A DNA stretch of 64,000 bases from Stylophora pistillata (Eukaryota). Positions 1,520-24,762 of the stretch are shown here, piece by piece (positions within the stretch are counted from its first letter, which is position 1; the number at the start of each line of letters is the position of its first letter). Made by a program: the position numbers and the translations under genes. Location of the stretch: the NCBI RefSeq assembly GCF_002571385.2, contig NW_019217911.1, forward strand, positions 1 to 64,000, read 5' to 3'. Below the pieces are notes generated by a model. The model did not search any database, was not told the origin of the DNA, and saw nothing but the letters and a program-made list of their open reading frames with translations.

Positions 1520-2750
1520 ATGGCATCTTCAGAAGCTTCAACCAGTGCAAGTAGCCTGCAGGAGCAGAAAAAGCAAAGGCAGATTGATGTCATGTTTCTT
1601 TGTGATGAGTGGAGATCTTTGAAGGGTGGATTATCAACTTTCAATCGTGAGTTTGCCATTAACTTGGCAAAAGCGAGGATTGGCAGCATGAAAATCCACT
1701 GCTATGTCTCAAAAAGTAATGATCAGGATAGAGAAGATGCCAAAGAACATGGTGTAAATTTAATCATAGCTCGAAATGTACCTGGTTCAGTCGACCCCCT
1801 CTCGTGCTTGATGTCTCCACCCTCTGAGCTTCCAAATCCACATCTGGTGATAGGCCATGGAAGAAAGCTGGGTGGTCCTGCATTTTGCCTCGTACAGAAT
1901 ACAAAGTGTAAATGGATTCAATTTGTTCATGTTTGCTGTGAAGACCTAGGAAAGTACAAGAAAACAAAAACAGCTACAACAGATACAATTGAAGAGAATG
2001 AGAAGAAGCACAAGATGGAAATCGAATGTTGCAAAGCAGCAGATGCAGTCGTTGCAGTTGGCTCACGTCTACAACAGAAGTACACCAGAAGTCTGCCAAA
2101 TCTCGTAGTGGAGATTATCACCCCTGGAATCTTTGAAAGGTTTTGTTGTGAATCACAGTCGGCTATGCGTAGCTTAGTAAAGAAATTTAATGTGTTCTTG
2201 TTTGGCCGAGCTAGCTTTGAGGATCTCTCCTTGAAGGGCTATGATATTGTTGCAAATGCCATAGGTTCCCTCAGAAAGGACTTTGAGCTGACATTTGTTG
2301 GTTCATCTCCTGGTGAACATCAAAAAGTTGAGAAGTGGTTTCTTGAAAACACTCACATCAACCGCAACCAACTAACCATCCGTGGTTATTGCAGTGATCC
2401 AGAGGAACTCAAGATGATGTTCTACCAGTCAGATTTGGTCGCCCTACCTTCCCCTACTGAAGGCTTTGGGCTGGTTGCCTTGGAGGCCATATCTGCTGGA
2501 GTTCCTGTTCTTGTATCTGGTGAATCTGGAGTGGCTGAGGCTTTGAAAGAAGTAGAAGGTGGAAACACTGTTATTATTGAATCAGATGAGGATGCAGATG
2601 AATGGGCACAGAGGATTAGAGACACATCCGAAGAAAGTGCAGAAAAGAGAAGAGCCAATGCCATGAAGCTGCGAGAGAATTACAGGGAGGTTTACTCTTG
2701 GAGAAAAGAATGTGAGAGATTCAGTAAAATGATTGAAAAAGTTACAAAGG
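1520..2750 (+). CDS. Glycosyltransferase exon (GT-B fold, CAZy GT4 / Glycos_transf_1-like)
   Basis: GGLSTF N-terminal loop, FGR..LSLKGYD, and EGFGLVALEA (E-x7-E signature) followed by GVPVLVS. Donor AAGG|GTGAGC at 2751, phase 1. Confidence 0.88.
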
Positions 2751-3032
2751 GTGAGCCCCTTGTAGTTTTGCTTTTACTCATTTGTTGCTATTTTACATTT
2801 ATTGGTTGTTATGAAATTTTAGGTTTATTTGAGCCACGTAAGAAAGAATGAATACTGATATTTAGCAATTATTACACAATTCGGGCAGTCAGAGGGCCTA
2901 TAACTAAGATCAACTAATCAAAATGCTCTATTGCCGGTCAATATTCTCTAAGTATTGGACCGGGCACTGTCCAGAATGGTCCCCAATGATACCGCACTTG
3001 TGTCCCTTTGAACTTCAGTTGTATGATAAATC

Positions 3033-3178
3033 TCTTATTAACCAAGGTTGCTCGGGACCATACTGGAAGAATATCGGCCCTTAGTCTTTTTTGTATGGAC
3101 CTCGCTGCGCTTGGTCCATACTGTCAAGACCTTGGGCCAATATTCTCCCAGTACGGCCCTTGCGCTTGGTTAATAAGA
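3033..3178. repeat. Long imperfect palindrome (hairpin-type interspersed repeat)
   Basis: TCTTATTAACCAAG...CTTGGTTAATAAGA ends, with nested arms ATACTGGAAGAATATCGGCCC / GGGCCAATATTCTCCCAGTAC and TATGGACC / GGTCCATA. Confidence 0.75.
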
Positions 3179-21000: not shown

Positions 21001-24000
21001 AAAGGTAAAGTAATTCTTGACCTCACCCGTTCAGATTCATGGTCACCTGGCCAGGAACATGTTGCTGCTTTGTTAAGGAAACTGAACTGTCCAGAAGTTA
21101 ATGTCGATCTCATAAGCGGTAACGGAAGGCGGAATGTATCAGATATACTGAAGGCTTACGTCTCTTACCCCAACTCATCGCAAGATACACTGAAAGTGCT
21201 AGATCACCTGATGAGGGAAGGCGACATTTCCAATATTCTATTTGATCACGAAAAAATCTGCATGTTGCAATTCTTTCAAGATGACTTAACAACTTTAAAG
21301 CAAGACCAAACATCTACTTTCATTGTGAAACGCTTGCCGTTTTTCAAGACATTTCATGGAGCATCTGTGAGCCTTGCAAATTTTAAATCAGTTTACGAAA
21401 TCCCGGTGGGTTTACCAACTGATGAGTCGGAGGTTTGGATGACAGGATATAACTGTGTATTTTTTGCGCCAGAACCCAGGTTGAGCCGCTTGTACAAGGA
21501 TCTTCTAGGTGTCGGTGATAAAACACATACAGACTGTTACATCAACTTCATTTTCCCAAAGTTTTCCCTTCTCCAAAAGAAAACTCGAATGCTTCACCTG
21601 GAATACGTCCGACGAATTTTACTAGCACCGAACTGCAACGAAGAGCAACAAGCAAGAATTCTTAAATCTCTCAGCACCTTGGCATTTATTCCAGACGCCA
21701 ACGGGACGTTACAAACTGCCTCTTATTTTCACGATCCAGGCGTAAAAGTCTTCGCGGTAATGTTACCATGTGAAGCAAGGCCACCAGAGCCGTTTGACAC
21801 TACAAAGTGGTTGGAGCTCCTTCGCAAAATCGGCTTAAAGCAGAAAATCAGCAAAGCTCTATTCCAAACCTTCGCCAATGAAGTAGCTTCGCAAGCGATA
21901 CAGATGAGCAATTCAAGTTATCCTTCATTGGAAAAGAAGTCAAAGACACTTGTTGAGCACCTCTTAACAGACGACACTCTACATGATGCAAAGTTCCTTG
22001 TCGACCTCTCCACGATTAAATTTATAGCGTGTCCAAAGGCAAGTGGCGACCTAAGTCTCCTTTGCCGGCAGCATTTGGTACCTAATCGAGATGAAATTCC
22101 TCCATTTGGCCATTTCAAGCATTCAATTCCACACACACAAGAGGCACTTGCATGGACGACTGCGTCTCTTCTTTTTGACTGGGCTATTCCAAACCCCAGA
22201 ATCCCACTGCTAAAAAACCTGCAAGTTTTTCAGAAGCCTTCTCTGCAACAAGTCATCGGTCATATTAGAAACCTTTCGCAGACTCTTTCAAGGCGTGCCG
22301 ATCGAGAGCAACCAGAACATCAACGGCGACTTCTGAGCCAAATCATGACAGAAGTTTATAGATTTCTTACAGATACTGGTGGTTGTAACGGCACCGATTC
22401 TAATGAACCGTGTTCAGCCATGTGTGATACAATCTGCAACCAGCTTTCCGATATTCCCTGCGTTCTTGTAGAAGGTGGCCGTGTTTTCGTCCGAGGCAAA
22501 CAGCTGGCGTTTCACCTTGATGAAGAACACCCGCCCTATCTGTACAAAGTTCCTAAAGAATATGGAATCTTTGAACACTTGTTCAAACGCCTTGGAGCTA
22601 TGGAGAAAGCAACACCTACGCAGTTTGCCCAAGTTTTAAGTAATCTCAGAAACTCTTGTCAAGACAAACAGATGCACGCCAATGAATTAAGAGTTGTAAA
22701 AAAGGCTGTCTTTGGTCTATTTACTACCTTGCACGCTACAATTTGTCGAAAAGAGGATAGAAGGGAAAGCAACCCATTAGCTGAGGTCAACACCCTCCAT
22801 CTTCCAAACAGCAAGCAAGAGCTCAGGCCATCCACGGAATTGGTCCTGTTTGATTGTCCTCAGTTCAAACATCGCCTGTCAGATTCTATGTTCGAGTTTC
22901 TTGATGACCTAACAAAATACAATTTAACAATGGAAAAGCCTGGTAAGCTTGTCGACCTTTTGCCAGACCACTTAAAGACAAAATCCTTGGCATCCATGGT
23001 GAGGGAAGAACTACAAGCCGAGTGCAGAGGAAAGAACTGCCGAGCCGACGTCGAAGGAAAATGTGGGGCTACAAATCACTTTCGTCACATATTGTATTCG
23101 CCAGATCTCGCAAATGGAATTGTACGAATACTGAAGTCTCAGTACGACAAAGCTAAATTGACAGAAGAGGTCTGCAACAAAGTTCGCAGTTTTCAAAAAG
23201 CACTAAGCATCAGTTGCATGGAAACTTTATCCACGGAGTTAGTCGATAATAAATCAAACACGGTCATTCCTAAAAGTCAGAGGCAAACGTACTCAGGTTG
23301 CTTTGTGGGACAGGACAACGGTAAAAAGCACATCTTCATCCAACATGGTGCGAAGTCTAGTGATACGAGGAGAAAGATATGCCATGAAATATACAGTCTG
23401 ACCGGCTGCCTCCTCGAAGAAGAGAACTTATTACACTTGGCTGCCATCCTTGAATGTACGTCCCCGGCTGATATTTCTATCACACTGGATAATGCTGGAG
23501 TGTCGGATGATGCTGAAGCTACCCAAACACCAAGTTTGGAACCAATTCTTGGTTCTGAGGTCCCCAAAGAGTTTCACGAGCTTCTAGACCAGTATAATGA
23601 TTTCTATTTTCGTCCAGGAGAGTTTGTTGCATATGAAAGAGAAGATTCGACCGATGAGGAACCAAAATACATTTATGCAAACATCGTCCGCCAGGTTAAA
23701 ACGTCTACTTCTGCCAAAGTTAAAAAGGACAGAACAAAAAGAAAACAAAAAGGAGAGAGTAACCTACTTAGCAGATATCTCATAGACATCGGTCCTGAGA
23801 GGGAAGAGGTCGATGTTCTGGATTTGTACAAGTTTAGACGGCCGCGGAAGAGCGAGGAAGAGGAAGTAGACGAGAAAGAGTCTCTTTCTAAATCGATGGA
23901 GGTTGTGCCTTACGTAGGAGCTAGTGGGCAAAGTACTGGACAAGCAGGGGCGGAGACAGCTGGGCCCTCTCGAGATGCAAATGAGCCACTGAAGCCTCAG

Positions 24001-24762
24001 ACGTTGGAACACGCCCTGAAAGAGGTGAAGAAAGCTCTTACCGAAATTTGGAAGTTTCCAGAAGATAAAAGAAAGAAAGCAATAAAGCGGCTATACCTCC
24101 GATGGCATCCAGACAAGAACATGGACATGCAAGACACTGCAAATGAAGTAATGAAGTTTATACAAAACGATGTCGACAGGTTATCAAAAGAAGGCGGTGC
24201 AAGACCACCACCGCCAGATTTTACGGACTTCTTCAAGCAATGGAATGAAAGAGCTCGACGAGAGCGCTCAAGCCACGAGAACTACCGCCGCCGCAACCCA
24301 CGATTTCCAGGTTTCGCATCACACTCGAGAAGAACCTACACGGCACCCAATCCACGCGTAGCGAAGATATGGATGCGTCAAAGCAAAGAAGACCTGCGCT
24401 CAGTAAAACATCTCTTGTCTTCCCGAGATCCACTTTACTACCTTGTCTGCTTTCAGTGTCATCAAATTGCGGAGAAATCTCTCAAAGCAGCTCTTTACGC
24501 TCTATCAGGAGTCGCAGACTGGCAGCTGAACTCTCACGACTTGGTTCTATTGGCACGTGATCTTTCACGACTTCCTAGAGCTCCAGATGTGACAGCGCAA
24601 GTAGCCAGGCTGTCGAACTATTTCGAAGGCACTCGATATCCTAACAAGCACGAGCCAGCTAAAGTGCCTGCGGAGGTGTTCCAAGATTCTCAGGAAGTAC
24701 AGGAATCGTTCAGACTGGCCACAGAAGTTTTGGAAGTACTAGAACAGTTTGTTGGAGCATAA
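12017..24762 (+). CDS. SACS: Sacsin giant terminal exon (rest of SRR1, SRR2 from ~15700, SRR3 from ~18780, J domain ~24010-24190, HEPN ~24350-24759); one in-frame TAA at 13291-13293
   Basis: ORFs 11989-13293 and 13312-24762 are in the same frame. Repeated KELxQNxDDA, GxFGxGF, TLFRFP and TGLPVHV(N/H)GxF motifs; LYLRWHPDKN; CFQCHQIAEKSLKA...SHDL...TRYP. Confidence 0.95.

Follow-up and report, generated by a model that had tools for sequence, protein, structure and literature searches.

A GT4–TRADD-N head before a sacsin-like body in Stylophora pistillata: transcript evidence, possible origin and two in-frame stop codons

In the first 64 kb of contig C128 (NW_019217911.1) of the Stylophora pistillata assembly (397.6 Mb in 5513 contigs), a stretch referred to below as the window, seven coding exons place a GT4-type glycosyltransferase domain and a TRADD-N domain ahead of a giant sacsin-like body that ends in a HEPN domain. 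Although RefSeq annotates three genes here, RNA evidence shows that they are transcribed as a single unit, at any rate from the TRADD-N exon on. We read the locus, with evenly balanced confidence, as a lineage-specific chimeric gene of S. pistillata whose frame is cut in this assembly.

A transcript running from TRADD-N into sacsin

RNA from four runs (X1 and X3 of one study, X14 of another, and X24 as raw reads) was mapped to positions 4400–10290. Runs X1, X3 and X14 each yielded one spliced contig (342, 334 and 365 nt, respectively, with 0–1 mismatches) that began in the TRADD-N exon, 36 nt before its end, and crossed junctions 5278/6151, 6252/7868 and 7969/8791 to reach position 8885, with the X14 contig extending 28 nt past this border. 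The stretches skipped by these contigs were all bounded by GT..AG and unique intron bins had zero depth, indicating that the contigs stem from spliced RNA and not from DNA carry-over. Since the exon at 8791–8885 (exon 5) encodes the sacsin N-terminus, TRADD-N is spliced into sacsin. The sampled raw reads of X24 gave zero depth on these exons. Further downstream, the runs with polyadenylated RNA contained a fraction of 0.52–0.86 of the words sampled from 13300–23299.

In the window, introns at all listed exon borders (Table 1) were of the GT..AG type with matching phases, and the coding sequence opens with the ATG at 1520, in agreement with the original prediction that the exons join through canonical, phase-matched introns. 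This prediction had also named junctions to be sought in RNA: 5278/6151, 6252/7868 and 7969/8791 were indeed present in the polyadenylated RNA contigs, whereas for 2750/4757 and 8885/11484 the basis is RefSeq models (XP_022789411.1 and XP_022789410.1 use these as well as 11748/12017). Its view that the sacsin part lacks a start of its own was borne out as well. Exon 5, which restores phase 0, holds no ATG and is directly preceded by an in-frame stop, and the linker exon was its sole upstream partner among the RNA contigs.

Pfam profiles were run on single exons, the joined queries being the public proteins P0271 and P0273 alone, and confirmed the predicted content of GT4, TRADD-N, sacsin repeats and HEPN. 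The GT4-conflict profile (PF20706) matched at 283.4 bits (cut-off 26; 3.7e-84) over positions 2–384 of 385, with an intact E-x7-E motif (EGFGLVALE, residues 314–322 of the exon-1 product), the C-terminal motif of retaining GT4 enzymes. TRADD-like_N (PF20694) reached 33.4 bits (cut-off 23.7; 3.9e-8), over profile positions 21–69 of 69 only. One SACS repeat (PF25794) is spread over exons 5–7 and two more lie in the large exon; P0271 has three SACS stretches. HEPN (PF05168) scored 59.7 bits (cut-off 22; 4e-16) and carries the R-x4-H motif RYPNKH. The DnaJ match in the large exon was weak (16.7 bits, under the cut-off of 27.8), with its HPD motif present. None of the exons matched a NACHT or NB-ARC NTPase profile or the ubiquitin domain PF00240, and likeness to nucleotide-binding leucine-rich-repeat (NLR) receptors or other signal transduction ATPases with numerous domains (STAND) is limited to the shared GT4(-TRADD-N) head.

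Table 1. Features of the fused locus in the window
Feature	Positions	Strand	Basis or remark
Sacsin-type 5′ element	35..456	+	blastn: L002, L003, L012, L013, own-genome C891 and C361 copies; 70–85% identity
5′ exon of the GenBank model	475..540	+	PFX26360.1 residues 1–22 map at 100%
GT4 exon (coding sequence from ATG 1520, 1231 nt)	1472..2750	+	PF20706, 283 bits; phase-1 donor
TRADD-N exon (exon 2; low-complexity linker and TRADD-like N domain)	4757..5278	+	PF20694; phase 1-1
Linker exon A (34 codons, phase 1-1)	6151..6252	+	Both joints in RNA contigs of X1, X3, X14
Linker exon B (tandem duplicate of A, phase 1-1)	7868..7969	+	Both joints in RNA contigs of X1, X3, X14
First sacsin exon (exon 5; N-terminus of SACS repeat 1, ...GGQILK)	8791..8885	+	RNA joint 7969/8791; homology to Acropora RefSeq N-termini
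Assembly gap (N run)	10293..10969	.	Within the 8885–11484 intron
Second sacsin exon (exon 6; EIIQNADDA..., Hsp90-like ATPase motifs)	11484..11748	+	PF25794, 123.9 bits; XP_022789410.1 maps here
Large sacsin exon (exon 7)	12017..24762	+	Rest of SACS repeat 1, repeats 2 and 3, J-like domain, HEPN; terminal stop 24760–24762

XP_022789411.1 maps onto the GT4 exon at 100%, and acceptor 4757 of the TRADD-N exon is the same border as in the spliced homologs P0207, P0135 and P0283. The 5′ exon of the GenBank model is open and without an ATG (donor 540/541, CTGCA/gtaagt); its junction 540/1472 has the GenBank model alone as its basis. The assembly gap is without effect on the frame, with exon 5 ending and exon 6 starting in phase 0. 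As the joined RefSeq protein covers SACS model positions 2–239 across exons 5 and 6 without a hole, no hidden coding exon is needed in the gap; Acropora RefSeq proteins have the identical ...GGQILK/EIIQNADDA... continuity. The gap sits within 9858–11112, a stretch without counterpart in a collinear sister copy described below, and thus within a copy-specific intronic insertion.

The intron before the gap carries a tRNA-derived repeat (9448–9716) resembling a short interspersed element (SINE), with its tRNA-like part at 9521–9593 on the minus strand (Rfam tRNA 35.5 bits; gathering score 29) and a hairpin at ~9640–9716. RNA contig depth on this repeat rose to ~2×10^5, numerous contigs ended loosely at 9673 and 9704, and this very large depth indicates that the SINE-like repeat family is abundant in RNA. 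A related piece lies at ~1216–1300, adjoining a 20-N gap (1196–1215).

Origin of the fused head

The genome of S. pistillata contains five copies of this sacsin subfamily, two of them fused and three plain. In the three plain copies, as in six related loci from other coral samples, the exon-5 equivalent is preceded at a distance of 2–2.5 kb by a 5′ element of ~420 nt, and the interval between the two is empty. Homology of the window to these plain copies spans 35–456 and then resumes only at ~8475–8650. With the element upstream of GT4 and homology resuming only there, the GT4, TRADD-N and linker exons are located inside what in a plain sacsin-like gene is the first intron. The element, in which the GTAAGT donor at 110/111 is conserved, is the probable promoter and first non-coding exon of plain sacsin-like genes.

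The linker exon regularly follows TRADD-N in other GT4-TRADD-N proteins of S. pistillata, whose genome holds more than 100 GT4 matches. The linker being typical of the GT4-TRADD-N family, the whole head appears to derive from that family. Both fused copies carry the linker exon twice, and a ~1.7-kb tandem duplication is the source of linker exons A and B in the window. The intronic repeats at 6370–6566 and 8143–8339, situated within this duplication, had RNA depth in the thousands, and contigs there jump from 8166 to 6464.

The second fused copy lies on C891 and is arranged collinearly with the window, with 86–91% identity in exons and 72–78% in introns. A tree of the large exon, built on its first 770 codons, unites the two fused copies as sisters (Shimodaira–Hasegawa-like approximate likelihood-ratio test 100) and places them among the Stylophora plain copies, apart from the clade of Tara samples, which points to one capture followed by duplication. 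In both fused copies, the ancestral acceptor of the plain copies has given way to a new one 6 nt further upstream, and this new acceptor is the one used in RNA.

Taken together, a cassette consisting of a GT4 exon, a TRADD-N exon and a linker exon (the latter duplicated afterwards) would have come from the large coral GT4-TRADD-N family and landed in a sacsin-like paralog, downstream of its 5′ element and ahead of its first sacsin exon. The phase-1 borders of such a cassette correspond to the phase of the sacsin acceptor, and this would have allowed it to be spliced in frame ahead of the sacsin body.

A mini-exon with an ATG at 8666–8706 was considered as the lost native sacsin start, encoding an Acropora-like N-terminus, and was rejected: its ATG, in the window as well as in the plain copies of S. 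pistillata, either lies out of phase or runs into a stop, and RNA depth at this place is zero. As for the native start of plain paralogs, the 5′ element of one Tara copy offers a start with 30 open codons, which its inverted twin lacks. In the Tara coral metagenome locus L002, two sacsin-like genes stand head to head, with inverted duplicates of the 5′ element at 4751–5271 (minus strand) and 6095–6611 (plus strand), ~0.8 kb apart, forming a bidirectional promoter-like region. Elsewhere in the S. pistillata genome, C724 (25170–25775) matches window positions 33–101 some 150 nt upstream of a GT4 fragment (residues 1–132, 77% identical, two stops), which looks like a leftover of the same 5′ region, rearranged or processed. 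Clusters of sacsin-like paralogs extend over ~9.9–70.5 kb of C891 and ~8–26.6 kb of C361.

Two stop codons and the competing readings

A number of observations weigh against reading the locus as a lineage-specific chimeric gene. The predicted single frame of 5021 codons stands as the sum of the exon lengths (15063 nt), but not as an open frame, for the TRADD-N exon contains an in-frame TAG (4819–4821) and the large exon an in-frame TAA (13291–13293). RefSeq divides the locus exactly at these two stops, in line with the original expectation that an automatic annotator would split it, into the GT4 protein XP_022789411.1 (431 aa, ending at the TAG), XP_022789410.1 (720 aa, beginning at a Met of the TRADD-N exon and ending at the TAA) and a 3816-aa sacsin tail. 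The junction from GT4 to TRADD-N was absent from the RNA over 4400–10290, and the 5′ part of exon 2 was almost without depth. In the sister copy, the GT4 exon has two stops and the sacsin exon one, the copy also breaks at a single N, and the stops imply that the head can be lost. Six related loci in other coral samples (L001, both copies of L002, L003, L012 and L013) are cassette-free like the plain copies; for L011, the closest foreign homolog, the upstream sequence amounts to 95 nt and is uninformative on the cassette. Finally, no fused homologue outside the S. pistillata genome was found among the long proteins of other species.

Sequence divergence between the copies argues in favour of the chimeric gene. 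Between the two fused copies, the ratio of nonsynonymous to synonymous substitution rates (dN/dS) was 0.24 for GT4, 0.24 for the large exon (3068 codons) and 0.15 for exon 6, with values of 0.45–0.82 for the TRADD-N and linker parts. When changes were counted per branch, with two plain copies as outgroups and a neutral ratio of 3.5, the window branch had 68 nonsynonymous and 97 synonymous single changes, corresponding to an omega of ~0.2, and the sister branch and the shared stem likewise gave ~0.2. Together with a large exon in which, the TAA aside, all 4247 codons are free of stops and frameshifts, these values indicate that selection maintained the fused gene over most of its history.

Both stops are single-base changes relative to the sister paralog, which has TTG at the position of the TAG and GAA at that of the TAA. 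Moreover, the TAG position is read through by the spliced homologs P0207, P0135 and P0283, and the TAA position by the 4250-aa open exons of many relatives. The strong constraint on the window branch suggests that the stops either arose very recently, are allele-specific or reflect base errors. An in-phase alternative acceptor (4906/4907) would bypass the TAG; no canonical bypass of the TAA was found, and an ATG (13312) lies shortly 3′ of it.

A possible, though rather unlikely, alternative is a recently broken gene or null allele, from which the chimeric transcript is made while translation ends at TAG 4819 or, via acceptor 4907, at TAA 13291, so that no full-length protein results and decay has set in as in the sister copy. 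The presence of both stops in the assembly as well as in the RefSeq models would fit such an allele, as would the stops in GT4 and sacsin of the sister copy. Only one of the four C891/C128 copies is fully open in exon 7 (C891 ~53.9–66.8 kb, 4278 codons), the other three having a nonsense codon, a frame break or a single-N join, and the C361 copy is divided into split open frames. This is what a birth-and-death family would produce, and it means either that the family turns over quickly or that the short-read assembly carries errors. However, a null allele has to be reconciled with the otherwise clean exon 7 and low window-branch omega, with a GT4 domain that is intact across 410 codons and itself constrained, and with the continued presence of the locus in polyadenylated RNA runs. 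A single-base error or a heterozygous site, moreover, would give the same picture.

It is less probable still that the product comprises TRADD-N, linker and sacsin only, starting at the Met in exon 2 as in XP_022789410.1, with GT4 belonging to a gene of its own further upstream, the mRNA of which terminates no later than exon 2. The RNA contigs indeed enter exon 2 by only 36 nt, and positions 4597–4793 had zero depth in all runs, but such a hole in contig depth proves nothing. RefSeq sets GT4 apart from the rest, yet its GT4 model itself uses junction 2750/4757. Kaur et al. (PMC8195603) list GT4-less proteins with TRADD-N and sacsin from S. pistillata and Acropora digitifera, and the GT4 exon of the sister copy is broken; against this, members of the family as a rule have GT4 spliced to TRADD-N at just these borders (P0207, P0283, P0285), GT4 is under purifying selection beside the sacsin body, and the sacsin-type 5′ element lies upstream of GT4 and not between GT4 and TRADD-N.

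That the three RefSeq models are independent genes with normal products, as their annotation and the closeness of ATG 13312 to the TAA might suggest, is very improbable, since homologs read through both positions, both stops are one base away from paralog sense codons, and the 3816-aa piece lacks SACS repeat 1 and has no promoter or 5′ exon of its own that could be found. Positions 4819 and 13291 need re-sequencing before any expression or structure work on this protein.

Relation to catalogued proteins and known systems

Contrary to the original prediction, the architecture is not undescribed: it is already known as a catalogue entry, uncharacterised. The 90% cluster of the 3816-aa open reading frame holds PFX26360.1, XP_022789411.1 and XP_022789410.1, and mapping onto the window identified GenBank PFX26360.1 ('Sacsin, partial', 4913 aa) as a fused model of this very locus. 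It starts at the 475–540 exon and evades the stops via acceptor 4907 and an ad hoc intron near 13084–13314, and the published 4913-aa model therefore conceals two stop codons. PFX26360.1 is listed as GT4-GTase+TRADDN-DEDD2+HSP90-Sacsin+DUF3684 (×3)+DnaJ+HEPN (Kaur, Iyer, Burroughs & Aravind, eLife 2021, PMC8195603, Figure 4-source data 1), alongside XP_022789410.1 and two further proteins that join TRADD-N to sacsin, one of 4675 aa from S. pistillata and one of 661 aa from Acropora digitifera. The same study defined the GT4-TRADD-N combination and proposed GT4 as a conflict effector, found the TRADD-N clade (TRADDN-DEDD2) fused to sacsin among other partners, and proposed sacsin as a component of antiviral conflict systems (PMC8195603). 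It describes the same locus with the same 4913-aa architecture, but as a catalogue entry only, without transcript evidence, an account of its origin or a remark on the broken frame. What is added here is RNA for the splice from TRADD-N to sacsin, the two concealed stops and a history of capture followed by duplication.

The search for a fused homologue that the original prediction had suggested returned none among the long proteins of other species or the six related loci. Word-indexed searches with P0271 (region 1–645) and P0273 (region 1–300), in which query length was limited and the top word-sharing candidates were scored, revealed no other protein that combines TRADD-N with SACS. Among the best 150 matches of a GT4 search against 1.84 billion protein representatives none exceeded 1762 aa, and for P0039, P0135, P0272 and P0273 no exact match on a contig was on record. 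The only other long proteins found with this head are P0274 and P0275 of Oculina patagonica.

As to function, the GT4 head may act as a sugar-transfer effector that glycosylates an invader or host target, a role that follows Kaur et al. (2021) and what is known of the family, while TRADD-N would serve as an adaptor recruiting or oligomerising partners. The Hsp90-like repeats and J-like domain could form an ATP-driven sensor or chaperone scaffold, and the HEPN domain would provide the output by RNA cleavage or nucleotide binding. By its domain content, and following Kaur et al. (2021), the whole protein might thus have an intracellular anti-invader role. The joining of a sacsin to an enzymatic GT4 head and an adaptor of the death fold favours the view of coral sacsins as immune scaffolds and not as chaperones alone. 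Sacsin-like genes recur in coral stress and selection studies, for instance in Acropora, where such a gene has two old haplogroups (PMC8626496).

On a broader level, GT4, TRADD-N and linker may constitute a portable phase-1 cassette that enters the first introns of unrelated giant cytoplasmic proteins and is kept by selection, a reading that we consider about as likely as not. Its hosts would be sacsin here, a HELZ2-like helicase/RNase in Oculina, and NLR or LRR (leucine-rich repeat) bodies elsewhere. If true, this locus and its sister would display both the gain of a head (one event, then an omega of ~0.2) and the onset of its loss (a broken GT4 in the sister, nonsense codons here), and would offer a natural series for the study of head swapping in invertebrate immune proteins.

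Compared with vertebrate sacsin (SACS / DNAJC29), with which it shares the three SACS repeats, the C-terminal HEPN domain with its R-x4-H motif and possibly the J domain (a weak match that bears the HPD motif), the S. pistillata protein differs at its start. Vertebrate sacsin begins with the ubiquitin-like PF00240, whereas GT4, TRADD-N and two linker exons stand in its place here; vertebrate fragments do carry PF00240 at this position, as had been predicted. Identity to chordate sacsins is ~30–35%. The plain coral sacsin-like genes (in the S. pistillata genome, Tara L001–L003, L012 and L013, and Acropora and Montipora RefSeq) are much closer, with bodies 55–86% identical and the exon 5/6/7 structure and 5′ element in common, but have no GT4, TRADD-N or linker exons. 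The Acropora and Montipora RefSeq proteins are headless with a short start of their own; in the Acropora models this is a short first exon (MASSRLQ...) spliced to the exon-5 equivalent.

The head, in turn, has its counterparts in the GT4-TRADD-N-LRR proteins and their kin from cnidarians, cephalochordates and hemichordates (Kaur et al. 2021), which have the same GT4, TRADD-N and linker exons. The nearest GT4-headed relative, P0135 (GT4-TRADD-N-LRR), is 70% identical, and the bodies of these relatives are LRR, NACHT, Death or ankyrin, none being sacsin. In Oculina patagonica P0274 (3037 aa) and P0275 (3543 aa), a GT4-conflict plus TRADD-like_N head (56% identical) precedes a HELZ2-like body that contains SF1 helicase and RNB exoribonuclease domains. 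These comparisons support the earlier proposal that a sacsin scaffold was coupled to a GT4 and TRADD-N head, and its analogy to effector-swapped NLRs is reasonable, with the same GT4(-TRADD-N) head occurring on LRR, NACHT, Death, ankyrin and HELZ2-like bodies.

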